Assembly (NCBI GenBank): GCA_964106915.2
Contig: OZ066914.1
Origin: Podarcis gaigeae
Lineage: Eukaryota
Length of the DNA: 64,000 nucleotides
Strand: one strand, 5' to 3'
Below the pieces are notes generated by a model. The model saw only the letters and a list, made by a program, of their open reading frames with translations. It ran no database searches and was not told where the DNA came from. Below, piece after piece: positions 9,926 through 38,786 of this stretch; position 1 is the first letter of the stretch, and the number at the start of each line of letters is the position of its first letter. A program made the translations under genes and the position numbers.

Positions 9926-10064
9926 NNNNNNNNNNNNNNNNNNNNNNNNNNNNNNNNNNNNNNNNNNNNNNNNNNNNNNNNNNNNNNNNNNNNNNNNNNN
10001 NNNNNNNNNNNNNNNNNNNNNNNNNNNNNNNNNNNNNNNNNNNNNNNNNNNNNNNNNNNNNNNN
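9926..10064. other. N run covering the EIF4G2 stop codon and start of the 3' UTR
   Basis: 139 N directly after ...EEESE. Confidence 0.95.
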
Positions 10065-15998: not shown

Positions 15999-18900
15999 TC
16001 ACTCTTCAGTATTACCACCAACTGGAAACCAGAAATATTCAATGATTTTCCTGCCTCTTCTAGCAGGTGTTCTCTCCTGCAGTTCAGCAGGACAAAGTCC
16101 ACACATCTGAGGATGTCCAGGGTTTGAACTGGGTGCAACAACTCTGTGCAAAATCCTGCAGAGAAATAAAGACTCAACATAATAGTTAATGCAAAAACTC
16201 AGTATGTCTGCAGCATAGTTTCTCTACTGCATGTTATTTCCCCATTTCACTAGTATGTATTTATTTAAGCCTCCTTTTGGTGCATGTACACTTTAGGGTT
16301 GCCATATGTCTAGAATTTCCCAGACATATACGGAATACTGCAGTTGGAATCAGTGTCCAGGCAGAAATTGCTGGAATGTCCGGGGAAATCCAGATGTATC
16401 TGTGTCAGCAGTGTCGTTATTTTGGCGATTTTACTTAAAAATAGCTCCAATTTTATTTTATTTTTATTTTATTTTGTGATATTGTCACAAAAGCTCAACA
16501 ACCTTTCTGTCTGGATTTCTGTCTGAAATACGGCAACCCTGATGTACAGTATATACAAGCAATGATTGTATGGGAGAAATGAGGGGTAAGAGAAAAAATG
16601 ACAAGTAGAGTGTTTGGAATACTAGGCTGGATCAGTCTGTACAAACAGATTTGCTCCCTGTACAAGTGAGCAATCACTAGGCTCCTTAGTTTACTCACTG
16701 AAAGCAGCAAACAAAAGGAAATGCTTCTTGTGATCATCAGAACATACGTTATGGGAAAGTGTGTATCTCTTTAACAAGATACTGACTTCCCCCTTGACCA
16801 GAAGTCAAACTCAGAAGTGCAGCCCTAATCTAGGGGTTCCCAACATAGTGCCCATGGGCACTGGTATGCCTGCCAGTACCTCCTATGGTGCCTACCAAAG
16901 GTCTCACTAAATATCCCCTAAAAATCCACAATGCATGAGAGAGCTCTTCCTGCTCTCTTCTTTGCAGTGCCTCAGTCTCTCCTACACCAAACACCCACAG
17001 TTCGTCATATGCCAGGAGAGGAGAGAGAAGAGTGGAGATGCAAAGAGCTGCTCTCTATGAATGAGTGCAGCAGTGCTTTATGTAGGTGCCCCACCACCAC
17101 CAATTGATTGGGGATGTGCTTGTCCACACCATTCTGTGGCCCTGCCTCTTTTTCTGCTCTTTTGGCTACGTTATGTCACACCTTAGGGAAGCCATTTTGT
17201 GTTAATCAGCACAACCCCCCACAGTAGCCATTTTGTGACCTGGCTATGGCATATTCTCAAAACTCCAAATAGCCCCAAAGGTTTGGCAACCCCGCTCTGA
17301 TTAATCTAAGCAGTAGGACTACTGGGACTAGAGACAGACCCAGTGTTCCCAGTGGTCTAGATCCAATTGTACATAGGTTCTTTTTCAGGTAACTTACTTT
17401 TCCTTAAATAATAACAAGTGTGGGGAAGCCACACTTTCTAAAAAGGCAGTGCCCAGGGAGGGGAGACTTATCTCTGCACTCCCCTCCACAATGAGTGAAA
17501 AAGGGATCCTTTGGATCCTCTGGTCTGGTTTATGCAGGGTTAAAAGAGAGCATATTCACCTATTTCCGGAGAACAATCCCCCCCCTTTTTTTTTAAACTG
17601 ATTGCATTGTATTACAGCCTGTGAGAGAACTGCTTAACACGATCAAAGTGACCTCAGCTTGCTGTCTGTGCGGTCTTCTACCAAGTTAATGCAAAAAGAC
17701 GGGTGGCAAACCAAAACTAGAGACAGCCTAGTTGTAATACTTTTTCCACCCAACATTGCTTTTATGAAGCTGGGAGTATGTTCTGTGCCTTTAATTTTAA
17801 AAAATCTGCATAGCTGAGATTAAAGATAAATTTTGTTTTTATTCAGTTTACCAAGTGACTATGATAACAAAACTACATTTGGGATAAATTAAGTAAGTGG
17901 AGGGGGTAGAGCAAAGAAAAAAATAGTCACATTTTTAAACTATATTTAGCCCTTTTTATGTTGGAAGAAAGCAAAGCCATTTACAGTATAAAGCTTAATT
18001 GGCTCTCCAGGGTACCCGATAAGTTTCCCACTTATCATACAAAGGGGTGAGTTGATGCAGTTAAAATTGTTCATTTGACAGCTGATGTTTAGATCAGCCT
18101 TCCTCATCCTGGTGCCCTTCACATATTTTGGAGGGCAGCTGTCATTATCCCTGACCACTGGTTTTGCTGGCTAGGGCTGATGGGAGTTTGGACCCCAAAA
18201 CATCTGGAGAGTATCAGGTTGGGCATAGCTAGCTCAGGTTAATAAAGCACTGTTGATTTACATGACATGTCCTGGTTTTCGGGTGTAAAAATGGCGTCGG
18301 GGAAATGTATGGCAATGTGATGGAAAAAGCAGCTTTTTGAAATACGACAGCCCTAATTTACAAAGGCTTTACAGAACAAAAAACAATACATGTTTCTTTG
18401 CTGAGGAACACAATATTTAGGCAAGGAGCGGCAAAAGACAGAGAAAGACGAGCAGCAAGAGCAGCAAGTGATAAGTGCGGAGAATTTAGAAGCTACATGA
18501 ATTTAGGGCTTATCTCAATGAGGACTAAAAGGTGGAGCAAAGGCTCCGCATCTTGTGTGGTTTTGAGGAAAGATCTGAAGGAAGGAAGAGGAGTGCCACC
18601 ACACAGGTTTTCGGGGAGGGATGTTCAAGCAAAAGGGGTGATGGAAGGATGTAGTTCCTGGGCTAAAGTGAGTCCCTATAAGAAAGCCATATTAGAGGAG
18701 CTCTGTTGGGTTAGATCCAAAGGTCCACCTTGTCCTGTTTCGCACAGCAGCCAACTAAAAATGCCTCTAGGAAACCCCAAAGCAGGACATTAGAAGCAAA
18801 ATCCCTCTGCTGTTGTAGCTCCCCAGTAATGGTTATTCAGCAGCCTACTGCCTCTGAAACTGAATGTTCCATTTATCCTCCATGACTCGTAGCCATTGGC

Positions 18901-21900
18901 AGCCTGATCTCCCATGAATTTGCCTCATGCCTTTCTAAAATCATAAACATAAGTCAGTGACCATCAAGACTAGCTTTAGATGGTCATCTTGTGACATTGT
19001 TCTATACATATGTGCTGTGTGAAATGTGTTTCCTTTCCTCTGTCCTGAATTTTCCAACATTCAGCTTCATTGCTTCATTGGATTGCCCTAAGTATTATGA
19101 AATGGAGGTGGGGCACAACAATTTTCTCTGTACCAGGAATATTTTTTAAAAATGCTTTTTTCACTGAGCCACTTTTTTTGTTAAACTGAAAAGCCCCAAA
19201 TATGGTAACCCTGGAGAGAAAACGCTCCAGATTCCTAATAATTTTGGTTGCCCTTTTCTGCATCTTTTCTAGTCCTACAATTTCTCCCCCTCCATTATTT
19301 TTTTAAAAAGATGGAGCAGCCAGAATTGTACATAATATTATTGTAGCACCCTTACACAAACACTCTCCAACAGTATCTGTACATTGAGGCCCAGGGCAAT
19401 CAGTCCAGGACAATAGGCAGCAACATTTTATTTACTTATTTATACTTTTGTGATTAGGAAAGTGATGGGAAAACACATAGAAAAGTGTGCAATGAGCTCA
19501 TGATTATAGGTAAGTGTCAGGTCTGCCTCTAGATCCCAGCTCACAGAGGACCAACGCCCGGTGGATATAATGTACAAAAGTCTTTATTGAAGTTTAGTTT
19601 CCATTTCAAAGCTCTGGGCGCGCAGACCCACGTCTTGACGCTAGACCGGCTAAGTCCCCTCTGACTCACTGCTCCACCTACACCAGTTTAAGATTCTAGC
19701 CCGGCTCCACCTCCTACGCTGTTCTTTCCTTCGCTGGGTCCTTCTGCCCTCTGGGGTTTCCTCCTTCCTGGACTCCTCTGACGCTGAGCCTCCTGAGTCT
19801 TGCCCCTCCCTCCGGCGGGCTTTAGGACCTGGCTCCCTTCCCTTCCCGGGCTCCCCGCTGTGCCGCGCTCCTGTACATTTGAACTTGGCGCGCGCGCCCA
19901 GCCGGTGACTTTCCTTCTGACCGTTTCCCCGCTTCCTGATGTGGGCGTTGCCAAACCTGACTCCTCTCCTCCCTCTGGTGGTGAGGACACTGGTCCCGAC
20001 TCCTGGGACTCCCCCTCCCCACTGCGCTCTGGTGGAGAAGCTGGTCCTGATTTCCAACTGCTGCTCAGGGACTCCCCGCTGGCCCCTTCCTCCTGGGGCT
20101 TCCCCCCTGGAACCCCCCTCACTCTGGCCACCGGCGCTCCCTTCTGTGAGTCCTCCGATTCGCTAGAGAGGCTTGTGGAATAACTCTGGCCACTGTCACT
20201 GCCTGCGCCCCCCTCGTACTCCTCCTCCTCACTCTCCATTTGCTCCCCCTCCTGTGTCTCTCCTTCTGAACCCCTGACATCCATCCCCCCTCGAAGCCCC
20301 CCCTTCCCCCCTCCCCCTCTTCAGGTGCGGGTTCCGGGTGCTCTAGAGTTGTCGGGGTGAGTTCAGGATACAGTTCGTCCCCCGAGGCGTGCAGCCAGCG
20401 TGATAAGTCCGGAAAGTCCTCCATGGGCTCGTCGACTGCGATTCCCTCCGCTTCCATCTCCTGGGCGGTGTGTTCGAAATCTGAGGCCGCCCCCAAATCA
20501 CTCAAAACCCCTTCTCCCCCTGTCGCCTGAGGTGACGCCACTTCCCAGGGTCCCTCCGACATGTCTCTGCGCCATCCCACTTCGGGTTGGTCCTCCCACC
20601 AATAAGATCCCCCCGTGCCAAAACCTGAGAGCGAGCCCTCTGGGGAGCTGCCTCCCGGAGCCGAGTCCTCCGCTGACGAGAAACCCCGGAAAGTGCTGGC
20701 CGATAGTGTGGGTGTGAACAGACAATCATCGAAAAAGCCCGCCGGCATAGGCTTGTGCGGGAAAAGTGTATGGAATTCTTCCTTGAGCAACTGCTCCTCC
20801 AATGCGTAATCCCGCACCCACCTGTTGGCGCTGGCCGGGGTGTCCTCTGTGGCGAGAAGATATTCAATCCCGTCCTCCCCCCACCTTGAGTCTAAAATCT
20901 CTGTGGCTTCATTAAGCGTCCCCGCTCTCGGCGACCCTCCTTTTCTGGGTGCTTCCCTGAGCGGGTCTGGTGCTGTCCCTGGTGCCTGAAACCTGTGGGG
21001 CCCTTTGTAGGGTGTGAGCACTGATCTATGAAAGACCGGGTGCATTCTGGACCCCTCCGGGAGTGTTAACCGGAAGGCCACTGGGTTGATCTGCGCCTCT
21101 ACTTGGTAAGGCCCTAGCTGCTTGTGCCCTAGCTTCTTCTTGGCCAACGATCTGGCCGGAACTGCCTGGGCTGCTAACCAGACCCAGTCTCCTACCCGGA
21201 TGTCTTCCCCAACCCTCCTGTGTCGGTCTGCCTGCACTTTGTAAGCCTGTTTCGCCATCTCTAACTGCCTCCTGAGCTGCTCGTGGATCTCCTGCAACTC
21301 CGCTGCCACGGCCTCTGCTCCCTGCGGCTCCCCCTCCCTCACTTTCTCCAAACCCGGGAAGGTTCTGGGATGCCGCCCATTGTTGGCGAAAAACGGTGTC
21401 ACCCCCGTGGACCCGTGCTTCGTGTTGTTGTAGGCAAACTCGGCCAACGGTAGATAGTCCACCCAGGTCGAGGGCTGCTGGTTCGCGTAGCATCTCAGGT
21501 ACTGCTGCATGATGGCGTTGACTCTCTCCGCCTGTCCGTTAGTCTGCGGGTGTCGCGCCGACGCCAGGCTGACCTTGACGTTCAGGAAACCCATCAGCTT
21601 TTGCCAGAAGTTGGATATGAACTGGCGCCCCCTGTCGGACAGGATGGACCGTGGTAGGCCGTGCACCTTGAACACGTGTTCTATAAACAGCTTGGCGGTC
21701 TGCTCGGCTGTGGCCACCTTCGCGCAAGGAATGAAGTGGGTCATCTTGGTGAACAAGTCTACTACCACGAGTACTGCCGTCTTGCCTCTCGAGCTGGGCA
21801 GATCCGTGACAAAGTCCAGGGCCACCCTCTCCCACGGTTCGAACGGTGCCTGTAGCGGTTCCAACAGGCCCGCCGGCGGCTGGTGTACTGGTTTGGCCCT

Positions 21901-24900
21901 TTGGCAGGTGTCGCACCTATTGACGTATTCCGCGACATCCCCCCTCATCTTGGGCCACCAAAGGTCTCTGGCTACTAGGTCCACCGTCTTCTCCTTGCCA
22001 AAGTGTCCCGCGCTGGGCGCGTCGTGCAGCTGTTGCAGGACCCTCGCGCGGAGGTTGTCTCCCGGCACGTAGAGGGCTCCTTTGCGGATGAGCAGGCCGT
22101 CGCGTATTTGGAAGTCGTCGTCCCTCGCCGTGCCGCTACGCACCTCCTCCATCTTGGATCGCGCGAATAAGTCCGTCTGCAGCGCGCGACGCACCACGTC
22201 CAGGTCCACCGTGGCTGACGCGCATGCCCACGCCTTTGGTGCGAAAATATGCTTGGCCGCCGCCGGCGCCTCTTCTTCGAGATACTGCGGTTTCCTGGAC
22301 AGCGCGTCCGCCATGATGTTGTTGTTTCCAGGGATGTATTCTATTCTGAAGTCGAAATCTGCAAATAACTCCGCCCAGCGGATGTGTCTCTGGTTCAGGA
22401 ACCTCGCCGTGCGCCAGTACTCCAAGTTCTTATGGTCTGTACGGACCTGCACCGTGTGTTTGGCCCCGACGAGGAAATGCCACCACGCCTTGAAGGCTGC
22501 ATGTATGGCCAGTAACTCCCTGTCCCAGATGGTGTAGTTCTGCTCCGACTTGCTGAGTTTCCTGGAGTAGAAAGCGCACGGCCTCCAGTCCCCCTGGTGG
22601 TCTTGCTGCAACAGGACAGCCCCCACGGCCCTGTCTGACGCGTCCGTCTCCACTCTCATGGGCCTGCTGGGGTTCACGTGTAGCAGGTGTTCCTCGGACA
22701 CGAAGAGGTGCTTGAGCTTCTGAAAGGACTGCTCTGCCTGCTCCGTCCAGATCAACTTCTTCTTCTTGGAACTGAGGGTGTCAGTGATGGCCGCTGTCTG
22801 CATGGCGAAACCTTTGATGAACTTGCGATAAAAGTTGGCAAAGCCGACAAACCTCTGGACTTCCTTTCGATTGCGTGGGCTCTTCCAGTCCAGCACTGCA
22901 CGTACTTTGGTACTGTCCATGGCGAGTCCCTTGTCGGACAGTTTGTAGCCCAGGAAGTCCACCTCCGTCTTGTCGAACTGGCACTTCTCCAGCTTGGCGT
23001 AAAGCCGGTGCTCCCGCAGCCGCTGCAGGACTTCCCTGACATCTCTCTCGTGAGCCTCCGGCGACTCTGAGAAGATGAGGATGTCGTCCAGGAAGCAGAC
23101 GCACTTCTTGTAGAGAAGACCCGCCAAGACATGATGCATGAATGCTTGAAAACAGTGGGAGCCATTTTGTAATCCAAAAGGCATAACTCTATATTCATAG
23201 GTGCCCAGCGGCGTAAACATGGCCGTTTTCCACTCGTCACCTTCCCGCACGCGAATGAGATTGTACGCTCCGCGCAGATCCAACTTGGTAAAAATGCGGC
23301 CCTTCCGCACCGTCGCCAGCAGGTCATCGATCTTGGGCATAGGGAAGGCTGAGGGCTTGGTTTTCGAATTTAAGACGCGGAAGTCCACGACCAGCCTCTT
23401 CCCGCTTCTTTACAAAGAATACAGGGCTGCCCCCCACCGCCTTGGACTCTCGGATGAATCTCCGCTTCAAGTTGTGATCTATGAACTCCCTGAGCTCCTG
23501 CAATTCATCCTCAGACATGGAATACAGTTTCCCCGTCGGGAGCGTCGCCCCCGGCAGGAGGTCAATCTTGCAGTCGTAGGGTCTGTGGGGAGGCAGCTTG
23601 TCCGCTTCTTTCTCGCAGAAGACCTCCAAAAACTCTTTGTACTTGTTAGGTACCGCTTGCAACATGCCCAAGTTCAGCTGTGGTCCATCCTCGTGCCCCT
23701 CATCTTCCAAGTCAGCCAGGATGCAGTGTTCTGCGCAGTAGGAGGAGCCGAAGGTCAGTTGCCGCTGGTACCAAGCTAATGCTGGGCTGTGCCTATCCAG
23801 CCAACTCATTCCCAACACTATGGGCGTGTCTGACAGGCGGGTGACGTTGAAGCTGATGACTTCGCGGTGATTACCAATGCGCATCACCATTGGCGGCGTC
23901 TGCTGTAGCACTTGCCCTCCCAGTAGCTCCCTGCCGTCCACCGTGACGACGTTCAGAGGTACCGTCGCTGGCAGAAGGGCTATGCCATGTTGCTGGATGA
24001 ACTCCATGCCTATAAAATCTGCATTGCTCCCAGAGTCAATGGTAATGGGGATTTCCACAGTGAGCCCATTGGGAAGGTGAAGGGATGCGGTGAGCTGCAC
24101 TACTGGTGTGGGTAGGAGGGGGTCTGTGGGCTGTAACATTACTGGGGATTGCTTCACTGACTTGTCTGGCTGGCCCCCAGTGACTCCATTTCCAGCCAGA
24201 CAGTGGAGTTTTCCTGCTGTGATTCACTCTGCTGAACTGCTTCTGTTACTGTCGCTGCGGCTGCAGTGTGCTTGTGAAACCGCTGGGGACACTCTTTCGC
24301 CATGTGCTGAGCACTGTCGCAGATGTAGCACTTCCTGGTCCCTCTAGGAGGCTTCATTTTGACTGCTCCCGGCGTTAGGGCTCCGGCTGTGGACTGAGCC
24401 TTAGCACCACCTATCTCCATCGGCTCCTCTCCCCCTCCCAGCGGAGGCATGGATCGAGCGCGCGCCACTTCCTTGGGAAAGGGGGGCGGTCCTCTCGCTG
24501 TCGTGCGTCCCCAATGCCCTTCCTCCTTGTCCCAAGGGCGTCCTTCCAGCCTAACCCCAATCGTGAGTGCCCTCTCCACAACGTCTTTGGTGGTTTGGGG
24601 TCTCTCTCCCCTTGCAATTTCGTCTTTCACAGCTCCGTTCAGCCCCTCCCAGAACAGGTCTCTGACGGCAGACGATTCTCTCTCCCAGCTCAGTACATTC
24701 ACCAATGCAAAAAGGCGTGAATGATATTGCCTTACAGTGGCTCTGCCTTGTCTTAGTCCGTGAATCTCTCTCCTAGCGATATCCACATCAATCTCAGACA
24801 AAAAACACGCATCCATCACTTTAAGGAAGGCAACCGCATTTTGGAGGGCTGGATCCTTATCTCTCCAGAGATTGCGCAGCCAGGATTTAGCCTCTCCCCG

Positions 24901-27900
24901 CAAATGCGATACTATAAATCCCACTTTCTCTTCCTCTCTTCTAAAGTCGTTCTCCAGTAGTTGCAGTGCATATACTACATCTGCTCTGAAGTTAGGATAC
25001 TGCTGCAGGTTCCCATCGAAATGCGACACAAGGCTCCCTCCTCTGTTCCCCAGCCCAATCCCCTCTGGTCTGGCGGCCGGTAGCCCTTGTGCAGTCAGCA
25101 CTTCTAACCTGGTTCGCAGATCCTGGCAGGTAGCAGCTGCTTCCTGTTCCTTCTTTCTGGACGCCAAAATCTCTGCGTTCAGCTGCGTCACGGCGTTTTG
25201 CAAACTTGCTACCTTCTCTTCGGTAGTCATCTTTCAGGTATTCGTGAGCTCGCGAAGTACCAATCTTCACCCCTCACTGCTTTCCCGCACGTCACGAGGT
25301 GATAAAATTGGTGGAGTCGGAGAGAGGGGACTTACTGTCAGGTCTGCCTCTAGATCCCAGCTCACAGAGGACCAACGCCCGGTGGATATAATGTACAAAA
25401 GTCTTTATTGAAGTTTAGTTTCCATTTCAAAGCTCTGGGCGCGCAGACCCACGTCTTGACGCTAGACCAGCTAAGTCCCCTCTGACTCACTGCTCCACCC
25501 ACACCAGTTTAAGATTCTAGCCCGGCTCCACCTCCTACGCTGTTCTTTCCTTCGCTGGGTCCTTCTGCCCTCTGGGGTTTCCTCCTTCCTGGACTCCTCT
25601 GACGCTGAGCCTCCTGAGTCTTGCCCCTCCCCCCGGTGGGCTTTAGGACCTGGCTCCCTTCCCGGGCTCCCCGCTGTGCCGCGCTCCTGTACATTTGAAC
25701 TTGGCGCGCGCGCCCAGCCGGTAACTTTCCTTCTGACCGTTTCCCCGCTTCCTGATGTGGGCGTTGCCAAACCTGACTCCTCTCCTCCCTCTGGTGGTGA
25801 GGACACTGGTCCCGACTCCTGGGACTCCCCCTCCCCACTGCGCTCTGGTGGAGAAGCTGGTCCTGATTTCCAACTGCTGCTCAGGGACTCCCCGCTGGCC
25901 CCTTCCTCCTGGGGCTTCCCCCCTGGAACCCCCCTCACTCTGGCCACCGGCGCTCCCTTCTGTGAGTCCTCCGATTCGCTAGAGAGGCTTGTGGAATAAC
26001 TCTGGCCACTGTCACTGCCTGCGCCCCCCTCGTACTCCTCCTCCTCACTCTCCATTTGCTCCCCCTCCTGTGTCTCTCCTTCTGAACCCCTGACAGTAAG
26101 ACATAAGCAAGCAAGGATAAATGTTCACTGTCGTATAAACTCCCCACAAACAAATCCGAATGAATGTTCAGTAAAGACTGGATGTAATCCAACATATTCA
26201 TTAAACGCTGTGCAAACTAATCTGGATGCTTAGTAAATAGGTCGCCTGGAAGAGCCCAGAGATTCTCTCACACTGATGGCAATGAACTTGGCCAAAGAAG
26301 AGGGTGAGCACTTGCCAGTCAAGGCACAACACAAAGTTGTCTCACAGACAGCTCACAGAGGAATTTGCTCATCTCTCAGCAGCTGCTCACAGATCCTCCT
26401 CCTCTACACTCTCTTTGTTCTTTCCACTTCTCTCTCACATTACTGCTACTTCATTTTTTTATCAATTTCTCCTTCAAAGATCTGTAACTACAAAGTTCAA
26501 ACTAAAAGCCCACAACAGTTGACTAGCTTGGATTTCAAGGATTCCTAATGGATTATTTTAGGAGAAAAATGATTAAAGGAGCAAAAAGCTCTTTGAAGAG
26601 CTGAACTCTTATGTGTCTTGATTTTCCTGGGCATGAAATTTTGCTCCCATTTTTATTTTCACAGAGGAGCCAATTTTCTGTTACCTAGTAGGGAGAGGAA
26701 GGATGGAAAGAGGTAGACAGTTAGTGTTGTCAGAGGATACATGAAAAGCAGAAGTAATGAGATGTGCCTTTCCATCAGTTTATTTCCTGTCTTGAATATG
26801 CCAGTAAACATATTAATTTATTACCTGTCAGATCCTCTGCACAGATAGCTCACTGTGAAGTTGGAGGTTAGGAGATGTCAGAGACTATAAAAGCCCTACC
26901 TGTCAGTGCTCTTGGCCTTTTCTTCATTGTCAACACCAGGGACTGAAAAACAAACTTGCTCTCCTTCCTGAAACATAGGCAAAAAACAAGAAATAAGAGC
27001 TGCTTTATAAATAAAGGATTGCTTCCACTTCATAGCAATTACTTAAGGTCTTGTTGACATGGCTGAAACCAGTGTGGGGCTGATTCAGAGGGATTACATT
27101 GAAAATGTGAGTTTTACCACCTCCTTAAAAAAAGAAAGTACTCCTGAATTAACAGCGACCTGTGCTTATGCAGTTATTTCAAAGGTTGTCTCCCCACCCG
27201 CAAGGTTCTTTGGATGGTATTTTACTCCCCACTTCCTGGTGAGTTTTTACAAATAGAACAATTCTGGAAGGAAGTCTTGAAAGATATATCTCAGATTACA
27301 GGTCATACCCTGGTCTTAGCCTTACTTATTCTATATACTTCAGATATGGACCAGTTAAGAAGTAAGGAATTGATAAAACGTTTATTAACAGCAGCTAGAA
27401 TGGTCACAACCAGAACCTGAAAAACATTGCAAACAGTCACAATGGGAAAGTTGTTGCAAAAACTGAAGGTGGCAAGGAGACAGAAAAAACAAGATAATTT
27501 TTACATTGTATGGTATGATTTTATTAAATATATAAATGAAACAACACATAGACAAGGAATACCGTAGAAATGGTGTAGATATTATGTATTATGAAATAAG
27601 ATGTATGTATTTACCTCCCTAGTGACCCATTTGTTAGTCTTGTCATGTTTTATTATTTATGTTTGCACAAAGAAATTATGATAATTGTTTTGTGAATGCT
27701 TTGTTACTGATTTTGTAACAGAAAATCAATTTTAAAAAAGGGAAAACTAGTGAGAGTGCACCTCACAAACTGGTTATGGGTCCCTCATGATTTAAAGGAA
27801 TAATTTTGAATTGGCTGATGGGCTGCCCCTGCTATAGACAATATATTATGACCATTGGCCATGTGGCTGGGGCTGATGGGAAATTAAAGGCACCATTGGG

Positions 27901-30900
27901 GCTACCTAGATATAAAAGCAGGGGTTTCAGTCAGGAATCTTTCCGACCTCTATGTAGAGGTATTGCAGATAGAAGTTGTGATATTTGCTCTACCACTGAG
28001 CTACAAGTAGCCCTTCCTCACATGGAGCCTTCATATGGAAGAGGAAGAAACAAAGCTACTAGGGGCCATTTTGTGTGAGCTAGGCATGTCAAATCAGCTG
28101 GAGAGATCAATCTCATTTTTAATATTGATTAAAACAGGGGGAGCTCTGGCTTATTTACAATTCTGACAGAGAGGCATATAATTTAATTCTGCTAATTATC
28201 AAATATAAGAAAATAGATCATTCTCAAAGTATCTCACAGGTTAATCAGATCACTGATATCTACATAATTGCCTCATACCCATCTTGTGTTGTTTTTCTGA
28301 GCGAATCCCACGTTAGCACACCCTTCCCCTAACCTTTAATGTTTTTAAAGAATGTAATAGTTAAGCAAGAATAGTTGGTGGTTGCAAGTTGCTGTTGGAT
28401 ACCTAAAAATACCTCCTAGAAGGAGTGCCCTGTGCATGTAAATCAAAAGCTCTTTTGTCTAGTTGCAATTCCATGACAATAAGCTTGTCACAATAGAACA
28501 GGAGGCTGCCAAGAGACAAATAATTAGAGCCCTCTCTCAGGAATTTAAAAATATGATTAAAGTGAACCCTACATGCACCATTTCATTTAAAAATTCCAAA
28601 TGTTATAAATTACCCAATTTCTAACTCCTGTCAGTTTATTTTTGAGTTTTACATGCTGAGCAAATTAATCAGTCAGATTGCCAAAGCTAATTCAGTTATG
28701 ACAGCATGCGCGGGCATATTTGGTAAATTTATTCACATCTTGGCTGCCTCTTTCAAAAATGGGTTGAATCCCACAGCAGAAGATAAACAGATCTTTCCTC
28801 CGACGGTAGGAGGTAGGCATGAATGCTACCCACACAAAATGATTTGCCTGTTTTATTCCATTTCTAGACTCACATGATACAAAGCTATTCCATCCACTGA
28901 ATAAAAAGGTTCAGTGCAAAACACTTCTAGTATTTTGGCATGTCAAGTAAGGAGCATATCCTTCAATTGTCTGCATTAAATTTAGCTATTGGCCAAACAT
29001 CTTCCAATACTAAGGGGCTAAGTGACATGTAGTTACATATTGTTGCTAAATTCTCCATGTGTGCCTCTCTGCCAGGCAGAGTGAGAAAGTCTTGGGTTTC
29101 TAATTTAGGAACTATTGCTTCTTGTTATGTACTACCAGTAACTATAGAGATACATAGAGCCTTGTCCATTTCGCCACTAAGACCAGATGCTGAAATTAGA
29201 AACAACACTTTGCTTTTTATTTCATTTTTTGTCCTTTATGTGTGTTAAATAATAAAACTAAATGTCACACTAAATGCCTTGGACTGTTACACCAGGGCTC
29301 CATTTATGTTCTCATAACGCTCTGTACTAATAAGTAAAACTTCTGAGTTCAGTGGGGCTTCCTCACAAGAAAGTACATACAGAAATGGAACATTAATGCC
29401 TAAAATCTAAGGAAGTTGTCCTGCGCCAAAGAATAATCCACTTCTCTCTAGGAGGGGAAGAAAAAGCAAATCCACAATTCCAGTTTATCACAGTTTATCA
29501 CAATTTAATAAATTTTGGCCCAAGCTCAAGGTTCTCTTTGTTACTTGTGTGCATATGGCACATTACTTTGTCTTTAAAAAAAAAAAGTGAAATTGATCTA
29601 TAATTAAGTATATTAATTTGCTGTTTTGTGGAGCATCCCAAGAGGCAGGTGCAGTGGTGATACACCAAGGTTTTTTGGGTTTTTTTACAAAGCATTTTGA
29701 AAGGAAAAGTTGAAGATGAATGACTGTTAGCTTGATACTTAACAGGCTGTTATTTCCACTAGTCCAATATACTACCACCCGAAATTCATATTTGAAACAT
29801 GCTTATTCTTGCACATTTGCTTAGTTCATTTATATAAAAAAGAAAAACTAGTCCTGAGCTGTAATCCTGAGCTCTTTGTAGCACTGTTTCATTCTGTACA
29901 AGTTTACATGGGGCCATTTCCATCTTGTGACATATGGAACACAGTACTGGTGTTTTCCCCTCTGATCTCAATGGAAGTAAATTCCAAGTTGTTTACTGTT
30001 GGTTTTTGTTCTAAGGTGCTTTCAAAGCTCTTCTCTTCCCTTAGCATACATGTGTTTGGTAAGTTAAAAATAGTTTACTTACAAACTCTTCAAAGGTCAG
30101 ATTTATGTGTTTTTCCATACAGCAATAAGAAAACACGGGCAGCAAAACTTAGGTTCCATAGTGGTGAATGTTTCTAAATTATTTGTATAGAAACACAACT
30201 ACAGCTTGCATAAGCCATGTAGTCAGAGCTTGGAGCAACTGGTTCAGATCTCTTTGCTTGCCAGAGTTCACATGGTGGTATGAAAGAGCAAGGAGTTTTA
30301 TAATCTTTCCTTGCAAGGTGAGGGAGAGTGACCCAGCTAAGCCTGGCAGGACATTTTACTCTATGGTCTTAACCCCTTCATGCATTAATTATAGGAGCCT
30401 GCTTATCCCACACTTACCGCAAATCTCTGTGGAGTTCCATCTTCATTTCTTAATACTGTTATGTGCTCATTGCTTTCATTGATACACAAGAAATAGTTCT
30501 TTATTTTCACCTGACACTAAGAAGAGAAGGGAAGAAGAAATGCTGACGCAAAGTTTAACTTCATTTGGGGCTGCTTATTCAGAAATACAATGGGGGGGGG
30601 GAGTTTTAGACTACCAGGAAGACACAAAAGACATCCTGCATCTCAATTACTTATTTGTTTTCCTTCAGAAATGTCGTAGTGTGAATCCAGTGGATTTCCA
30701 CTTGTACAACAGGATATCACCATCTTCTCTGCACCACATACACCCCCAAAATCTGCTTAGGAGGGTCTCCCAAAGGTGCACGGGGGATGAAGGGAAGGAG
30801 GAGAGGAAGATGGCATCCCATTCCACTCAGATGCATACAGTGATGATTCCATAGCTAGGACTGACTGTTCAAGGAGAGGTCTGGAAACTGGAGAAGCTAG

Positions 30901-33900
30901 AGGCTGAAGTGCGTAAGCTTCAGCTCTGTTGACCAGGCAACAGTGAAATCAGAAGGCCAGGCTCTGGCAGTTAGCTATACCAGGGTTCTGCGATGTAAGC
31001 ACACACAAGGTCAAACAAGACGTGACTTTAAACACAGGATTAGAAAACACACTTATACAGGCTTTGTGTCTCTGCTAGCAAAAGAAAACCCTGCTGTTGA
31101 GGGCTCCCTCATTTTCGTCAAGGCTGTGATAGGGGTTAATCTGTTTCCTTGCATCACTTCCACTCCACCCCAGCTGCTATTTGCCAGAGGACAGAGGGGA
31201 AAGGGATAAACTCCCCTCATCCTGAGCCACAGTTTAAATTCAGGCTGGGGCTGTGCGGGGTCAGGACCTTGCAGTTGCTTTTTCTAGATAAAGAGCCAGT
31301 CCAAGTTCTTTTTTTGAACATATATTTAAGGTTGTGTCTTGCCCCCAGTAGCTCACTGGATCAGTTATCTCAAGCCATGAGGGCTTCCAGAACAAAGCCC
31401 AGAGTCATTGACAGAGCCATTCAGATTTCATAATGTATCAAAGTGGTACATACAGCTTTGTTTTGCCTTCTTGATTTTTCTTCCTCTTGGGATTGCCAGA
31501 GGTCTGCCATGGCACTATATTTCTTCATCCACATCTCACACTGTTTTTCCTTCTCTTCTATGTCCCGTTCTAGCAAGCGCTTCCCCCTTTCCGACTCGTA
31601 ATGAAGCAAGGTTGCTTTCTCTAAAGCTTCTTCAGCAGCTTCTGTTCTACATCTTTGAGAGATTTCACTGGAATAGGTGGAGGGGAAAATGTTTATTTAG
31701 GGGTATAGGCTTTCCCATCCTAAAGGCTTCAACTAGATAATGAAATGAAATGAATGAAATGAAATTGTGATAGCAGAATAATACTTCTTTGAATTCAATT
31801 AAATTTGTTTCTCAACTTAACTCTAAACTCCAGACTATTGTAAACAGGCAGATCAAATGACATTTCCAAAAGGTTTTCAGGCTTGGAGAATGTATGAATG
31901 TCACTGCTGAATGAACCTCATGGTGTTGTTAAGAAGCTGCTCTCAGCAGATTTTAAGAGATCCTAAAGGTAAAGGTAAAGGGACCCCTGGGTAAAGGGTC
32001 CAGTCGTGGCTGACTCTGGGGTTGCGGCTCTCATCTCGCTTTACTGGCCGAGGGAGCTGGCGTACAGCTTCCGGGTCATGTGGCCAGCATGACTAAGCCA
32101 CTTCTGGCGAACTAGAGCAGCGCACAGAAACGCTGTTTACCTTCCCGCTGGAGCGGTACCTATTTATATACTTACACTTTGATGTGCTTTCAAACTGCTA
32201 GCTTGGCAGGAGCAGGGACTGAGTAACGGGAGCTCACCCCGTCGCGGGGATTCGAACTGCCAACCTTCTGATCGGCAAGTTCTAGGCTCTGTGGCTTAAC
32301 CCACAGTGCCACCCGCATCCCTTTAAGAGATCATAGTGAGGCTTATATTTGGAGTGTTTAAACCAGGAGTGGGGAACTTGTGGCCTGTAGCAATTGGCAG
32401 AGTGTGGGAGGTTGGAGTGGTGTTGGTTACTTGGGTTCTCAATGCATAGATCACTGTTGGTAACTGACAGGGACTCTGACAAGGCCAGGATGGTGTGGGT
32501 GTAGCAGCTGAACCCAAACAAACATTGCACTGTGCAGACCTCCTCACTGCCTCCCTCTCCCTCTCTTGGTTACTGGAAGCAACCTCTGCATTGGGAAGTC
32601 AGGTAAGCAATACTGTCCCAATTCTCTACACCCCCACTGGCTGCTACTGCTTATGGCCCCTTCAGATGTTTTTGGACTACAACTCCCAATATCCCTGACC
32701 ATTGGCCATGATGGCTTGGGCTGATGGGAGTTGGACTTCAACAAGCACACACCCAGAGGGCTACAGGTGTGCCACCCTTGGTTTAAAGCTATATACTTTA
32801 CTATATTTATTCCAATTTTAAGACAACTAAGGATGATGGGGATGAATATTTCACAAAATGAGAGGTAGCATATGACACAGACCCTACAAAATGGGGTTTG
32901 GTATATAATTAAATGAATAAGCAAAATAAAAAATCATACACCATTGTTAAGATTGGGAACATCTCTGTGCAATAGACAAATATATCAGGAAAGGAGCAAC
33001 TGTTTTCTGGGATGGGAAAGTTGTGTCTAAATTAAAACCTTACCTTTCTTTACACTTCAAATTCTCTTCTAGTGTTCCTTTCAGTTTCTGCTTTAGTTCA
33101 TTCCTTTCATGCTCTAAATATCGTTTTTCCTCACAGATGACTTCCCTCTCCATTGTTATTCTCTCTAGTTTCATCTGACTTTCAAAGTGGCTCTTTTCCA
33201 CTTGTGCTAACAGCTGCTGCATTTCGGTTAACTGAAAGAAACAAATCAGAAAAACATGTTTTCCCCTCTCTAAGGCAGAAAGTTGCCGTGACAGCCAACC
33301 CGTAGAGGTTTTAACACCTATAAAAACAAAGGCAAAGAAAGAGTTTGAAGGAAGAAAAATAGCATGGAAGCCACTGCCTGAGGCGAATGATTCACATTGC
33401 TCCATGGGAAGTTTGGCCCTGTGCAGTATGAGATTTATTCTACTACATCGCTGTAGGCCAGTCTTTCTCAGCCTTGGGTCCCCAGATGTTGTTGGACTAC
33501 AACTCTCACCATTCCTAGCTAGCAGGACCAGTGATCAGGAATGATGCAAGCTGTAGCATAACATCATCTGGGGACCCAAGGCTGAGAAAGGATGACATAG
33601 GCAAAGGAGATATTTTGATAGGCTTGCTCTTATACATTGTACCATGACAGATATGGAATCCCGACAACTGGTAGTTAACTCCTCAGGGTACAAACTCATA
33701 CCTTTCTCTTCAGCTGCTGAGTTTCTTCTTTTAAGCTGATGTTCTCCAGCTGAACTGCTTCTTGCTGCTCCCGACACAGCTTTTCCTGGGCTTCAGCCTC
33801 CGCTTGGCCTTTCTCAGCTTCTGCCTGCGCCAGAGAGGCCTCCTCCACAAGCTTGGAGTATTTTGTCGCTGTCTGCTGAGAGGCATTCAGCTTCTGCTTC

Positions 33901-36900
33901 AGCTGAAGAGCAAAAGAACATGTGAATACAGTATTAGAAATTATTCCACAGTCATTGATAAAACTCATTCACCTTTGAGAATGGCCCCTCTAATATATCA
34001 TGGGTGGGGGAGAGAGGGAATTGTTGCTACGTGCTATCTGATGTCAGCAACACTTTACAGAGTGCAAGAAAATAGGTCAATGCCCTGAGGAGATTACAAT
34101 CTAAAATTTATCACAGGGGGGAAACAAAGAAGCCATTTCAGTTTTCATTTGCATGTGCTTAGATCAAATTTCACATTCAGGAGGATATGGGATCTAGGGA
34201 GTGTGCCAAAAGCTTTCCAGAAAAGTTTGGATCTGCCGAACTATTCACACCATATATTGAAAGAACTCTTATACCACTTTGACAGTCATAGCTTTCCCCA
34301 AAGAATTTTGGGAACTGTTGTTTGTTAAGGGTGCTGGGAGCAGGAGCTCTGTGAAGGGTCTCCTCACAACTCTCACAAGGGGCTTATGATTTAAAGCCTC
34401 CTGCAGTTTTTCAACATATATAGATATGTATTTTTAAAATATGTCAACTTTTTATTCCTTTCATTTTTGCTTAAAAGTTTTTAGTATTGTCACAATGCAG
34501 AAACATCCACAGAAATTAAACCTGTTTTGTTTTTGTTTTTTTACAGCCCCTCATTCTTTTAGTGCCTGATCATAGCAAACCTGCTATGAGTTGTTAGCAA
34601 CAAATTCTCTGCCAGTAGGTTTTCTCGCCTGATTTATTTTCACTTTGTTTCTCCTTACACTGAGAAAAGCGTAATGTTCTACAAAGGGCAGAAACTTTGG
34701 CAGACCTTGAATATAGCTTTCCTGCCAAAATATTGAATCTGACCCAGCCAGACATAAACTACCCATACAATATTCATCAGTAACGTTCACACTGGCAACC
34801 TCTCTGTAATCAAAGAAGAGGAATCAGGGTTTCCTTTTCAAAAAACATAAGCAGTTCATAATGCTTCTTCACAATATTCTTCTTTCTCTCTGATGAAAAA
34901 GATTACTTTAAAGTTAACATAGATCAATATTTTAAGTCAAATGGAAAACTGCATTTTTGTGATTTGTGTGGTGGCAAGCCCTTTTTACTCAATAAGTTGA
35001 GCAATTAACCTCCATAATACCAGTCACGTCCCACTGGTTTCAAATCTTCTTTTCTGTATTCGTATCTTAATTCATAAAAAAGAGGGGGGGGGGGAGAACT
35101 GAGACTGCAAGCCTATGGATGGGCCTTTGGCCTGATTCAGCAGGCTCTTCTTATAAATGCTTACCTGGAAGTAATCTCATTAAGCTTAATGGGATGCACT
35201 TCTGAGTGGGCATGTGTAGGATGGCTCCGCTAAAAGACTTGGATTAAATGCTTTATCCTGGATATTGGGATTCTGATGTCTGTATCTCAGAGTCAAGCTC
35301 ATTTTGAGAGGATTAAGGACAAAAGCTGATGCTCAATGACTCAAGTTCACCATACACACATACTTGCACAACTAGTGGCCTAGTTGGTGGATAGAAATTT
35401 ACACGCGGGGGGCACTGTGGGTTAAACCACTGAGCCTAGGACTTGCCGATCAGAAGGTCGGTGGTTCGAATCCCCGCGATGGGGTGAGCTCCCGTTGCTC
35501 GGTCCCTGCTCCTGCCAACCTAGCAGTTCAAAAGCAGGTCAAAGTGCAAGTAGATAAATACCAGTAGGTACCGCTCTGGCGGGAAGGTAAATGGTGTTTC
35601 CGTGTGCTGCTCTGATTTGCCAGAAGCGGCTTAGTCATGCTGGCCACATGACCCGGAAGCTGTACGCCAGCTCCCTCGGCCAATAAAGCGAGATGAGCGC
35701 TGCAACCCCAGACTGGACCTAGTGGTCAGGGGTCCCTTTACCTTATACCTGCAAGTTGTGAGGGAAACCACAACCCACACCCACACTCTGCTGTACCTCC
35801 TGGGATGTGCACCTGAGTATGAACATGCAATCTCCGTGCACATTTCTTGACCTAGAAGAATTACCAAGCACAGATCTCTATTTTTGGATTGGGCGGTTTT
35901 GCTTTTAGGTATATACCTTAAAAATGTAATTTTTGTGTGTGCAAAGCAGCCCATGGAGCCAGCTGTGAAAAAGTAGTTAGTTTACAGCGCAATCCTAACC
36001 ATGTCTACTTAGAAGTTACTCCTATTTAATTCAACAGAGCTTAAACCCCACAGGGAAGGAGTTAGGATGCAGCCATAGTTGCCACTGCATTGCAGAGGTG
36101 GAGTTCAGACCTTGCTTTTAGGTCCAATTGTTTCTTTTAGTGAGACTTATAGTGAAGCAGATCAAAACGTCACAAGTTGTACCTGATGTTTAATTATGAA
36201 CAACAACAGCACAATACTTTCTAATGGTTAAAAAATGTTTTTTAATAGCTACGTCATTTCCTCTAATTTCACAGCAGGGGAAGTTTTCAGACAAACTCTA
36301 TATTCTTTAAAGGGGACTACATTATGTTTAGTCAGGTAATGTTGGTAAAAAAAAAAAGCAGAAAAGAGCTCAGTCTGATAGTTTCATACCTCTTTAACTA
36401 GTGTTTGCAGTCCATGGTTTATATTTCTGAGATTTCTCATGCCCAGCTCGCTTTCCGATTTCATAAAAATTCTTTCCAAATGCAGCTCATTTGACAAGCA
36501 TTTGTTCTGTTTCTTCAGGTCCTCGCATTCCTGATGACATGCAGATAGTTTTTGTCTTAATATCATTCTGGATAATTTCAGCTCATAAGATTTATTGCAG
36601 CCATTTCTCTAAATTGAACAATTTTGAAACTGTTCCTATGTGAATCTGTTAGCTTAAGGTATTTCTGCCATGGCTGTGTGGGTGGGTGGGGGAGTTCAAC
36701 ACACTTCTCCAAGCACACAAATAATCTTTCAAGCGAAATAAAAGTATGCTGAGCAATAATCTATATTTAAAACATGTAGTGTTACAGCAGAAAGAGGTTA
36801 AAGGAATCGTACTGGCCATGAGCATCTTAGACTGAGCACGGAACCAACAATTGGCAAACAAAAAGGACATGCCGTGTGCTTCTTAGAGGGGCTGCAATCT

Positions 36901-38786
36901 CATTCAGGTAAACTACATAGACCAGATGACCTTCTGTCAATCAGATTCTGAATTAGTTTTGTGTGCTCATGCACAGCGAGGCTGCAGATAAAAAGGTAAA
37001 AGTTAAAGGACCCCTGGATGGTTAAGTCCAGTCAAAGGCGACTATGGGGTTGCAGCGCTCATCCTGCTTTCAGGCCGAGGGAGCGTTATTCTTGAAAAAC
37101 ACAAGGCCTTAACACAGGCATTTAGCCCATGCTTTCCTGTTCTTATAAATATCCTTTTTGTTTCGTGGGCATAAGAGCAAAAAAAATTCTGACTACATCT
37201 CATGGAAAGCCCAGTTCACAGGTGGAAGTCCTTGCTGGTTAGCTAAATCCCATTCATTAGAACAATCTAGATACAGATAAGCAATAAGAGTCTCATAGAT
37301 TATGGAGGACTCTGAACAATCTAAGAATGAATAAGCAGAAACAGCTGACTTTGCTAGGAGTGTTATTCATCTCCAATACAACATAACAAAAGAAACCCGA
37401 TTCTTGCTCGAGTAATACAAAATTCCTGTCTCTAATAACTTTAAAGCAAAAGAGAATTATGATAACATTCAATCTATTACGGAGCTACGATGGAAACTAT
37501 GTTCACCAAGATCTATCCTTCCAGCCCAGAAATGGCATCCTTGCATTCTTATAAAATAACTGTAATAAACGAAAATCTGTCCTCATTCCCTTATGTGGGA
37601 CACAAGAGCCCTTATAGAGTCCTTTGTATGTTCTCCATCGGTCGGAGGAAAAAAGAGGCCAACCAGAGAATATTGAGAAGCAAAGCAGCTTGCAAGCCTG
37701 ATCTTTATTGAACTGTTGCAACAGGGTGCCCCCTTCACACACAGGAGGAGGAGGACCCAGAACCAAGGTGTGTCCGCCCTTATATAGACATTTTAAATTG
37801 CCCACCTTGGAGTCAAAGACCACCCACAGAAACATCATACCTACATCACAGAGGGGGTGTAGCTCAAGACCACCACCCCAGATACATCATACTTACATCA
37901 CAGAAAGGGCGGGCTAAAGCAGAAATCTGAGTGGGTTGTTTACCTCCTGTCTGGCAAGTTATCTGTTAATGTTTACAGGATTGATACCCTGGGGAGCCTG
38001 GCCAGTCTTTTGTAATGATAAATACTTAGTTCCTGAACCAGATCATAGGCTCACCCTATTCATACACAGATATACCCTTAAGACAGGATTTGTGAAGGAA
38101 AAGACAATGGGGAGGCTTCTCCATTTGACCTTGCAGAGAAAACACCTGGTCAGCCTGGGAGTCAAAATGGCTCCATGGCTGCTCTCCTGTGCAGCTTCAG
38201 ACATGTGGCCTATATATCTATGTACGTGTTTGCTTGGTACATTTATGAACCTTTATTATATACATAAGACCTTAATGTATTTATTTCGTAAATTTCATAA
38301 CGATTACTTATAAAAATAGCAAGATTATTTTCACCATTTAGAAACCACGATACTAAAAGTCAAGTTTTAAAAGTAATTTTGACTTATGTCTCAAAGTTAC
38401 ACATTGCCCTGTGTTTTGAGGCATGTCACTTTAGCACACAAATAGTCACTGACCTTCCTTTTTCTCACAAGTTCTCCTTGTAGACGGTTGATGTGAGCAA
38501 CAGAGCCTCCTTGGATCACAGCACTGGTTGGGCGAATCCGACAAACAGGCCTCGCCCCACGACACAGATTGGCGTGATGATCCCCAAAAGAAATGGTAGA
38601 AAGGGGAGATTTTCCAGTAAGCCCATCAAGACTCGGCTTGCCATTAGTAAAGGATGTTGTGGCACCAGCACCGCTGCCATCAATAGTGGAAATGCCTTTG
38701 CCGCCTGCCGCGTTTTCCAGCAGAGATGGTTTCGTCGACAGATTGGCCCTGTGCGGGTCTCTCTGGGACAATGTCTTTTGTGGCAT
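15999..38786 (-). CDS. Uncharacterised coiled-coil protein, 8 coding exons, predicted 466 aa
   Basis: Exons in transcript order: 38786-38454 (phase 0), 36530-36390 (0), 33902-33702 (0), 33231-33044 (2), 31667-31454 (0), 30516-30418 (0), 26967-26900 (2), 16155-15999 (TGA). All GT-AG, most with clear polypyrimidine tracts. Total 1401 nt = 467 codons with no internal stop. The E/K/Q/L-rich heptad-like core runs from the end of exon 1 to exon 5. The true start and the last two exons are less certain than the core. Confidence 0.8.
16294..16541. mobile_element. hAT-like MITE
   Basis: Terminal inverted repeats TAGGGTTGCC...GGCAACCCTG with imperfect subterminal symmetry; TSD not clean. Confidence 0.6.
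16831..17296. mobile_element. Old hAT-like non-autonomous element
   Basis: TAGGGGTTCCCAAC...GTTTGGCAACCCC imperfect terminal inverted repeats. Confidence 0.4.
18690..19330 (-). mobile_element. Degraded CR1 LINE 3' fragment
   Basis: Minus translation QKRATKIIRNLE is a hallmark of the CR1 ORF2 C-terminus; CR1-like 3' end near 18690-18800. Confidence 0.7.
19515..20279 (-). repeat. 3' LTR (765 bp)
   Basis: About 5 substitutions and one 5-bp indel versus the 5' LTR by eye; AATAAA at 19588-19583; preceded on the - strand by the polypurine tract GAGGGGGGATGGA. Confidence 0.95.
20119..23400 (-). CDS. pol: Pol remainder: RT, RNase H, integrase (HHCC, DDE, GPY/F), degenerate chromodomain and acidic tail
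   Basis: KLDLRGAYNLIR, MPFGLQN, FLDDILIFS; ETDASD/ELLAI/TDHKNL/ADALSR; HDAPSAGH...CDTC; LDFVT, SDRG, GQAERVN; GPYQV; EILDSRW...EYLL...RWV at about 20910-20749. The ORF reads 160 nt into the 3' LTR. Confidence 0.95.
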   Translation of the reverse strand, partial: KRLVVDFRVLNSKTKPSAFPMPKIDDLLATVRKGRIFTKLDLRGAYNLIRVREGDEWKTAMFTPLGTYEYRVMPFGLQNGSHCFQAFMHHVLAGLLYKKCVCFLDDILIFSESPEAHERDVREVLQRLREHRLYAKLEKCQFDKTEVDFLGYKLSDKGLAMDSTKVRAVLDWKSPRNRKEVQRFVGFANFYRKFIKGFAMQTAAITDTLSSKKKKLIWTEQAEQSFQKLKHLFVSEEHLLHVNPSRPMRVETDASDRAVGAVLLQQDHQGDWRPCAFYSRKLSKSEQNYTIWDRELLAIHAAFKAWWHFLVGAKHTVQVRTDHKNLEYWRTARFLNQRHIRWAELFADFDFRIEYIPGNNNIMADALSRKPQYLEEEAPAAAKHIFAPKAWACASATVDLDVVRRALQTDLFARSKMEEVRSGTARDDDFQIRDGLLIRKGALYVPGDNLRARVLQQLHDAPSAGHFGKEKTVDLVARDLWWPKMRGDVAEYVNRCDTCQRAKPVHQPPAGLLEPLQAPFEPWERVALDFVTDLPSSRGKTAVLVVVDLFTKMTHFIPCAKVATAEQTAKLFIEHVFKVHGLPRSILSDRGRQFISNFWQKLMGFLNVKVSLASARHPQTNGQAERVNAIMQQYLRCYANQQPSTWVDYLPLAEFAYNNTKHGSTGVTPFFANNGRHPRTFPGLEKVREGEPQGAEAVAAELQEIHEQLRRQLEMAKQAYKVQADRHRRVGEDIRVGDWVWLAAQAVPARSLAKKKLGHKQLGPYQVEAQINPVAFRLTLPEGSRMHPVFHRSVLTPYKGPHRFQAPGTAPDPLREAPRKGGSPRAGTLNEATEILDSRWGEDGIEYLLATEDTPASANRWVRDYALEEQLLKEEFHTLFPHKPMPAGFFDDCLFTPTLSASTFRGFSSAEDSAPGGSSPEGSLSGFGTGGSYWWEDQPEVGWRRDMSEGPWEVASPQATGGEGVLSDLGAASDFEHTAQEMEAEGIAVDEPMEDFPDLSRWLHASGDELYPELTPTTLEHPEPAPEEGEGGRGGFEGGWMSGVQKERHRRGSKWRVRRRSTRGAQAVTVARVIPQASLANRRTHRRERRWPE
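23324..24214 (-). CDS. pol: Pol N-terminal part: aspartic protease and start of RT, in the -1 frame relative to gag
   Basis: IDSGSNADFI active site, IVLGMSWL, LPPHRPYDCKIDL, SPVFFVKK. The frame is open from the GGAAAAC site at 24214-24208 and is broken by a frameshift near 23400. Confidence 0.9.
   Translation of the reverse strand, partial: GKLHCLAGNGVTGGQPDKSVKQSPVMLQPTDPLLPTPVVQLTASLHLPNGLTVEIPITIDSGSNADFIGMEFIQQHGIALLPATVPLNVVTVDGRELLGGQVLQQTPPMVMRIGNHREVISFNVTRLSDTPIVLGMSWLDRHSPALAWYQRQLTFGSSYCAEHCILADLEDEGHEDGPQLNLGMLQAVPNKYKEFLEVFCEKEADKLPPHRPYDCKIDLLPGATLPTGKLYSMSEDELQELREFIDHNLKRRFIRESKAVGGSPVFFVKKREEAGRGLPRLKFENQALSLPYAQDR
24154..25230 (-). CDS. gag: Retrotransposon Gag (358 aa; coiled-coil N-terminus, capsid region, CCHC zinc knuckle)
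   Basis: FDGN...KVGFIVSHLRGEAKSW; LRQGRATVRQY; EEPMEIG; CYICDSAQHMAKEC. PEG10/sushi-like layout. Confidence 0.93.
   Translation of the reverse strand: MTTEEKVASLQNAVTQLNAEILASRKKEQEAAATCQDLRTRLEVLTAQGLPAARPEGIGLGNRGGSLVSHFDGNLQQYPNFRADVVYALQLLENDFRREEEKVGFIVSHLRGEAKSWLRNLWRDKDPALQNAVAFLKVMDACFLSEIDVDIARREIHGLRQGRATVRQYHSRLFALVNVLSWERESSAVRDLFWEGLNGAVKDEIARGERPQTTKDVVERALTIGVRLEGRPWDKEEGHWGRTTARGPPPFPKEVARARSMPPLGGGEEPMEIGGAKAQSTAGALTPGAVKMKPPRGTRKCYICDSAQHMAKECPQRFHKHTAAAATVTEAVQQSESQQENSTVWLEMESLGASQTSQ
25336..26095 (-). repeat. 5' LTR (760 bp)
   Basis: TG...CA ends; minus-strand AATAAA at 25409-25404; TATA-like TTAAA at 25512-25508. Confidence 0.95.
25471..26055 (-). CDS. Hypothetical LTR U3-encoded ORF (194 aa; acidic Ser-rich then Arg-rich); frameshifted copy in the 3' LTR
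   Basis: Continuous ATG-to-TAG ORF across U3 of the 5' LTR. In the 3' LTR it starts at ATG 20284 and is shifted by a 5-bp insertion. The T-poor strand makes a chance ORF possible. Confidence 0.4.
   Translation of the reverse strand: MESEEEEYEGGAGSDSGQSYSTSLSSESEDSQKGAPVARVRGVPGGKPQEEGASGESLSSSWKSGPASPPERSGEGESQESGPVSSPPEGGEESGLATPTSGSGETVRRKVTGWARAPSSNVQERGTAGSPGREPGPKAHRGEGQDSGGSASEESRKEETPEGRRTQRRKEQRRRWSRARILNWCGWSSESEGT
27200..27740 (+). mobile_element. 5'-truncated L1/Tx1-like LINE 3' fragment
   Basis: QIEQFWKEVLKDISQITG...LLTAARMV resembles L1/Tx1 ORF2 C-termini; AT-rich 3' UTR ending in an A-run near 27735. Confidence 0.65.
31964..32321 (-). mobile_element. Sauria-type SINE, full length
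   Basis: (ACCTTT)n tail; TSD TTTAAGAGATC at 31952-31962 / 32322-32332. Confidence 0.92.
33458..33596. mobile_element. Short palindromic MITE (CCAGATGTT...GGACTACAACTC family)
   Basis: CTTTCTCAGCCTTGGGTCCCCAGATG...CATCTGGGGACCCAAGGCTGAGAAAG inverted arms; related copies near 18095-18225, 32655-32780, 40015-40140 and 40930-41065. Confidence 0.7.
35401..35744 (+). mobile_element. Sauria-type SINE
   Basis: Same family as 745-1095; B-box GGTTCGAATCCC; CCCTTTACCTT tail. Confidence 0.9.
36991..37084 (-). mobile_element. Sauria-type SINE 3' fragment
   Basis: AAAAGGTAAA tail followed by GGGGTTGCAGCGCTCATC...GGCCGAGGGAGC. Confidence 0.7.
37629..38302 (-). mobile_element. Probable solo ERV-type LTR (boundaries uncertain)
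   Basis: On the - strand: tandem ~50-bp duplicated motif (37814-37915), TATATAA near 37786-37780, then AATAAA at 37709-37704, in U3-R order. No clean TSD found. Confidence 0.5.

Follow-up and report, generated by a model that had tools for sequence, protein, structure and literature searches.

Our analysis showed that the window, a 64,000-nucleotide stretch of Podarcis gaigeae DNA, contains an intact protein-coding gene that is conserved among lizards. The gene lies between CTR9 and EIF4G2, as the original prediction had placed it: the open reading frames of the window put CTR9 upstream on the minus strand and EIF4G2 on the plus strand, in convergent orientation. A frame check on the window sequence gave the same structure as had been proposed, eight exons on the minus strand from 38786 down to 15999, all seven introns GT-AG and the exon phases in agreement (0,0,0,2,0,0,2), which join into a coding sequence of 1401 nt (466 aa) that closes with TGA and has no internal stop; the peptides quoted from it earlier are also found in their places. 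The model is beyond chance, because the RefSeq protein XP_077786553 of Podarcis muralis (LOC114597877, 466 aa) matches it at 454 of 464 aligned residues (97.8%) with identical exon ends. Two runs of N (3018-3161 and 9926-10064) fall outside the gene, and an AATAAA at 15988, downstream of the stop codon, is not conserved in the loci compared. The features of the locus are, in the direction of the gene:

40562..40743, minus strand: conserved non-coding element with head-to-head OTX/CRX-like half-sites at about 40685, present in four lizards with one change in the skink
38787..39100, minus strand: conserved non-coding stretch above the ATG (5' UTR, promoter or acceptor region) that can be aligned across six squamate loci
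38454..38786, minus strand: coding exon 1 (aa 1-111), basic Ser-rich disordered arm with RPTSA at aa 85-89; the predicted long helix begins here
36390..36530, minus strand: exon 2 (aa 112-158), the most conserved part of the coiled coil, 64-72% identical to fish and newt
33702..33902, minus strand: exon 3 (aa 159-225), coiled coil
33044..33231, minus strand: exon 4, coiled coil
31454..31667, minus strand: exon 5, end of the coiled coil and a near-invariant Trp
30418..30516, minus strand: exon 6, predicted opening strands of the C-terminal beta-domain, strongly conserved family-wide
26900..26967, minus strand: exon 7, predicted beta strand and acidic loop
19515..26095, minus strand (the gene's sense): young full-length Ty3/gypsy LTR retrotransposon in intron 7, with a 5-bp target duplication and LTRs 98.7% identical
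15999..16155, minus strand: exon 8, predicted final two strands, of which EYFWxP is the terminal one, and the stop codon

Orthologous exons, for which the original prediction had asked, were found in an agamid, a skink, a phrynosomatid and in fishes. All eight are present in the agamid and the skink with matching exon ends and splice sites; in the phrynosomatid, exons 1-5 share these ends and sites and exon 6 is also there, and in fishes the ends and splice sites match those of the lizard for the exons mapped. The order read from Pfam calls recurs in the other lizards, the gene following CTR9 in all three loci with EIF4G2 downstream in the agamid and skink (in the phrynosomatid locus EIF4G2 lies beyond the flank retrieved). 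The 3' UTR of EIF4G2 (10065-10713) shows 94-98% identity among three lizard families, much more than the coding exons of the coiled-coil gene. Two apparent defects in related genes were rejected. The annotation of the agamid Phrynocephalus omits exon 2, but the DNA shows the exon intact, and the annotation of Phrynosoma is truncated because exon 6, itself intact, sits on an inverted piece between two assembly gaps (locus 31904-34304); exons 7-8 of Phrynosoma were not seen within the flank retrieved.

The retrotransposon in intron 7 carries gag, protease, RT, RNase H and integrase domains, an AATAAA inside each LTR (25409 and 19588) and a perfect donor-like GTAAGT immediately after the 5' LTR. 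Because it lies in the gene's sense with an AATAAA in each LTR, it may truncate some host transcripts ahead of exon 8, or cause them to be mis-spliced. Of the two conserved non-coding features upstream of the ATG, the one at 40562..40743 lies 1.9 kb away, and its OTX/CRX-like half-sites are putative functional sites. Four further non-coding stretches (42344-42651, 34600-34936, 28362-28940 and 17751-17989) are alignable among lizard families and may be enhancers or exons missing from the annotation. A CpG-rich bump at about 41530-41880, between CTR9 and the gene, looks like a SINE rather than a promoter island.

Searches were made exon by exon and then with database orthologues as seeds. The exon 1 search gave three genomic fragments (96, 69 and 70% identity), and a profile built from these and run against 50% representatives led to full-length proteins of the newt Pleurodeles and the goby Knipowitschia, to which all eight lizard exons align in order, with exon 7 weak in the goby and exon 2 missing from one newt isoform. 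Exon 2 is symmetric, and it is this exon that is left out of isoform XP_069079713. Two full-length searches seeded by database orthologues returned 87 and 90 clusters, whose union is at least 119; we estimate a family of about 135, so that the recall of each search is about two thirds. Two candidates, P0004 and P0008, were dismissed as chance matches driven by repeats. The family extends over sturgeon, gar, eels, bonytongues, herrings, carps, characins, catfish, salmonids, cods, percomorphs, newts and lizards, the latter represented by Podarcis, Lacerta, Zootoca, Lerista, Phrynosoma and Phrynocephalus (four families). The protein tree (31 rows) largely mirrors the species tree and gives no hint of old paralogues, no paralogue was found in the searches, and zebrafish and medaka each have a clear single copy. 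Intron positions and phases are the same in fish and lizard for the exons mapped, and a 1550-nt intronless fish contig, whose blocks correspond to genomic exons, represents a spliced transcript. The zebrafish, Lates and Caranx copies are convergent with EIF4G2 and have LYVE1 on the opposite side, which gives the order LYVE1-gene-EIF4G2 in fish versus CTR9-gene-EIF4G2 in lizards; convergence on EIF4G2 has thus been kept from zebrafish to lizard along with the intron positions. At the zebrafish locus, an acceptor-like site about 100 nt ahead of the ATG (around 9900-10000) hints at a non-coding first exon.

The proposal that the gene was gained in sauropsids is refuted by these orthologues, which adjoin EIF4G2 in zebrafish and percomorphs and occur also in newts, sturgeon and gar. 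The fish and newt copies date it at least to the bony-vertebrate ancestor, from which it has been inherited as a single-copy gene. Fish-to-lizard identity is 40-50%, with near-invariant blocks. Comparison with three lizards gave dN/dS values of 0.19, 0.23 and 0.15, the coil and beta-domain exons having the lowest; the gene is therefore under purifying selection rather than evolving at a ratio near 1. The description of the gene as unnamed needs qualification: it has no real name, but an identical automatic model (LOC114597877) exists and many species carry models with misleading automatic labels. None of these is a characterised gene. Our literature search, covering the family identifiers tried, pairs of neighbouring genes and a zebrafish clone name, found no paper.

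Among the matches listed in the two full-length protein searches there is no mammal, bird, crocodilian, turtle, snake or gecko protein, nor one from a frog, caecilian, coelacanth, lungfish or shark, and Anolis, Pogona, Sceloporus, Varanus and tuatara are likewise unmatched. The one apparent mammalian copy, a 'Mustela putorius furo' protein (P0173), is 99.8% identical to tilapia and was rejected as a database mislabel. The absence in mammals and birds is probably real, given the very many proteomes searched, and at the protein level it agrees with the earlier suggestion of a loss in mammals. The other absences are weak, because recall was about two thirds and lizards such as Anolis, Pogona, Sceloporus and Varanus, as well as tuatara, were also missed. 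A contig from SRR31946006 (588-910), at squamate-level divergence, has an exon 1 broken by a 40-nt insertion and frameshifts with its conserved end lost, which is a direct sign of lineage loss. In SRR13336340/41, by comparison, exon 1 is intact. We consider it improbable that the patchy range is a search artefact and that diverged or unannotated copies exist in most vertebrates, birds or mammals included. The searches were indeed word-based, kept the best 8000 candidates with a length filter and missed several expected lizards; however, the annotated proteomes of mammals and birds are very numerous, lizards that share those conserved words were recovered, no member out of 91 has a significant match to a Pfam family and the decayed copy shows that loss happens. 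The gene has persisted in ray-finned fishes, newts and many lizards, and several other lineages have apparently lost it.

The description of the product as an uncharacterised coiled-coil protein with a beta-rich end agrees with the frame, with the heptad period and with an AlphaFold2 model of the newt orthologue computed with 91 sequences. In this model disorder extends to about residue 91, a helix from 92 to 349 has pLDDT mostly above 90, and six strands follow between 363 and 458; hydrophobic residues recur along the coil with a period of 3.5. The predicted protein has a basic disordered arm of about 90 aa, one heptad helix of about 258 residues, and a small beta-domain closed by a conserved terminal strand. 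The continuous helix with its heptad hydrophobic period, as seen in the monomer models, is that of a long coiled-coil rod, which would be about 38 nm long if dimeric. The short beta-like segment and the distinctive C-terminus, listed separately in the original prediction, are predicted to belong to one domain with EYFWxP as its last strand. Conservation is highest at the junction of arm and coil together with exon 2, and in exon 6. Folded alone, the beta-domain gave a pTM of 0.59, with core strands at pLDDT 82-92 and uncertain loops. Its role is a guess, because no fold match was recognisable: the best VIA Z score among 48,161 chains was 3.8 with none at 5 or above, the best Foldseek E value was 0.78, the Atlas TM was at most 0.50, and C2, Fn3, DCX and ubiquitin-like folds gave no structural match well above background, a missing match being no proof of a new fold. 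An Atlas search by features also gave no match, the PDB returned nothing to a sequence search or to the family profile, and Pfam found nothing for exons, members or domains, the best E value among 91 members being 0.0013, in two of them. No significant profile match to myosin, golgin, trichohyalin, INCENP, CCDC88 or CEP131 was obtained in the 91 members. The database labels myosin, myosin-9, trichohyalin, golgin, tropomyosin and INCENP-like, which have no significant Pfam match behind them, were accordingly discarded as composition artefacts, and an ERK-type FxFP site was rejected since it occurs in only 4 of 91 members and forms part of a strand.

The rest of the arm is variable, and within it the motif RPx[ST][AGPS] is retained in 88 of the 91 orthologues, versus 2.4% of shuffles. 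The three orthologues that do not have it are those of Kryptolebias (P0045), Gouania (P0059) and Nelusetta (P0118); Kryptolebias belongs to a family, Rivulidae, reported as having lost parapinopsin. CEP131 has a disordered N-terminal part ahead of long coiled coils, and MAK and CILK1 are ciliary kinases related to CDKL5. The consensus of CDKL5 itself is RPXSA, defined on MAP1S, CEP131 and DLG5, which are regulators of microtubules and centrosomes (PMC6293279), and in this family a conserved motif of that type lies in a disordered region. We give an even chance to the protein being a kinase-regulated scaffold or adaptor at microtubules, the centrosome or the cilium. Within a restricted cell type, the protein would dimerise via its coil and serve at one of these sites; its basic arm would make contact with microtubules or with a partner, phosphorylation of the RPxSA serine by a CDKL5-type kinase (or MAK/CILK1) would act as its switch, and the paired beta-domains at the far end of the rod would bind cargo or an anchor. 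As functional evidence, a motif of five residues is weak, other basophilic kinases fit it too, and long coiled coils serve many roles.

Lineage loss, fast-evolving ends and coiled-coil architecture are also typical of structural proteins of the testis or sperm (manchette, flagellum or acrosome), patchy loss being common among germ-line coiled-coil genes, and the gene start has no CpG island. Such a function is unlikely, though it keeps some weight. A fish-lizard identity of 40-50% with near-invariant blocks is high for genes of this kind, the lizard models are often partial even though testis is commonly sequenced, no clear X-box was seen within 2 kb, and one killifish entry is a transcriptome record which we take to be brain-derived. 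Much more doubtful is a motor adaptor by which chromatophores would transport their pigment organelles, or a gene serving regeneration in cold-blooded vertebrates. Chromatophores and regeneration are common to fish, newts and lizards, the length of the rod would fit a dynein or kinesin adaptor, and a KxCQ[AV] segment past the coil loosely resembles LC8 sites. However, no CC1-box motif was found, the only dynein-adaptor matches being generic LxxE[LI] heptads, and no match came from frogs, snakes or geckos, all of which have chromatophores. Phrynosoma and Phrynocephalus, which are poor tail regenerators, nevertheless retain the gene with dN/dS of 0.15-0.19.

A cell type for the microtubule, centrosome or cilium scaffold could be supplied by the third eye, a reading that is compatible with it. 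The scaffold would be specific to photoreceptors of the pineal and parietal eye, and would have been lost together with parapinopsin and parietopsin as the third eye regressed; we regard this as rather unlikely. Both opsins are reported absent in mammals, birds, turtles, crocodilians, snakes, geckos, cartilaginous fishes, caecilians, coelacanth and lungfish (PMC11893379), and none of these groups gave a match. Matches came from ray-finned fish, newts and lacertid, skink, agamid and phrynosomatid lizards, and all four lizard groups possess parietal eyes (PMC12043008). The conserved OTX/CRX-like site upstream and the broken exon 1 in SRR31946006 point in the same direction, as may the partial lizard models, which suggest scarce RNA-seq cover. 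Against it, frogs retain the opsins yet gave no match, and Kryptolebias retains the gene, so that the agreement between the two loss patterns is broad, with frogs and Kryptolebias discordant. In addition, the absences are unreliable for the reasons of recall and unmatched lizards given above, and fish promoters have no shared conserved OTX/CRX site. In its full form, a ciliary, kinase-regulated photoreceptor scaffold whose beta-domain is undescribed and which third-eyed fish, newts and lizards have retained for about 430 million years, with repeated loss alongside the opsins, this proposal is equally doubtful. If it were true, the gene would to our knowledge be one of the first genes outside phototransduction to be linked to the loss of these opsins.

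The identification of this family adds a conserved vertebrate protein that has no name, Pfam entry or structural match and has been masked by dozens of wrong automatic labels. The family is real, ancient and uncharacterised, its small domain is unmatched and its pattern of loss is informative, while the gene itself had already been modelled automatically and its function is putative. A gene of fish, newts and lizards that is apparently absent in mammals and birds can point to a lost trait, the third eye being the candidate that stands out most, and the one clear copy in zebrafish and medaka makes function directly testable. Should it prove to act in testis or as a generic scaffold, its value would lie chiefly in the annotation and the new small domain.

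How the family relates to known systems can be summarised as follows. The RefSeq models of zebrafish (XP_021323459/XP_021328937), medaka (LOC105353641), Pleurodeles (XP_069079711) and P. muralis (LOC114597877) are the same gene, with the same exons, locus and motifs, but are automatic only and carry conflicting labels. With myosin tail, trichohyalin, golgin A6-like, INCENP, CCDC88B, rootletin and tropomyosin the family has only an E/K/Q/R/L-rich helix in common; there is no Pfam or PDB match to them, and the labels vary from species to species inside one orthologous family. With the CDKL5 substrates CEP131/AZI1, MAP1S and DLG5 it shares RPxSA, but it has no detectable homology to them, is much shorter, ends in a beta-domain and is restricted in range. 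Although unrelated to them in sequence, single-copy, and off the opsin map in frogs and rivulids, the gene resembles parapinopsin, parietopsin, lepidopsin/QB opsin and the 'elusive genes' (PMC5901865) in being old, kept in fish and lizards, and missing in mammals and birds.
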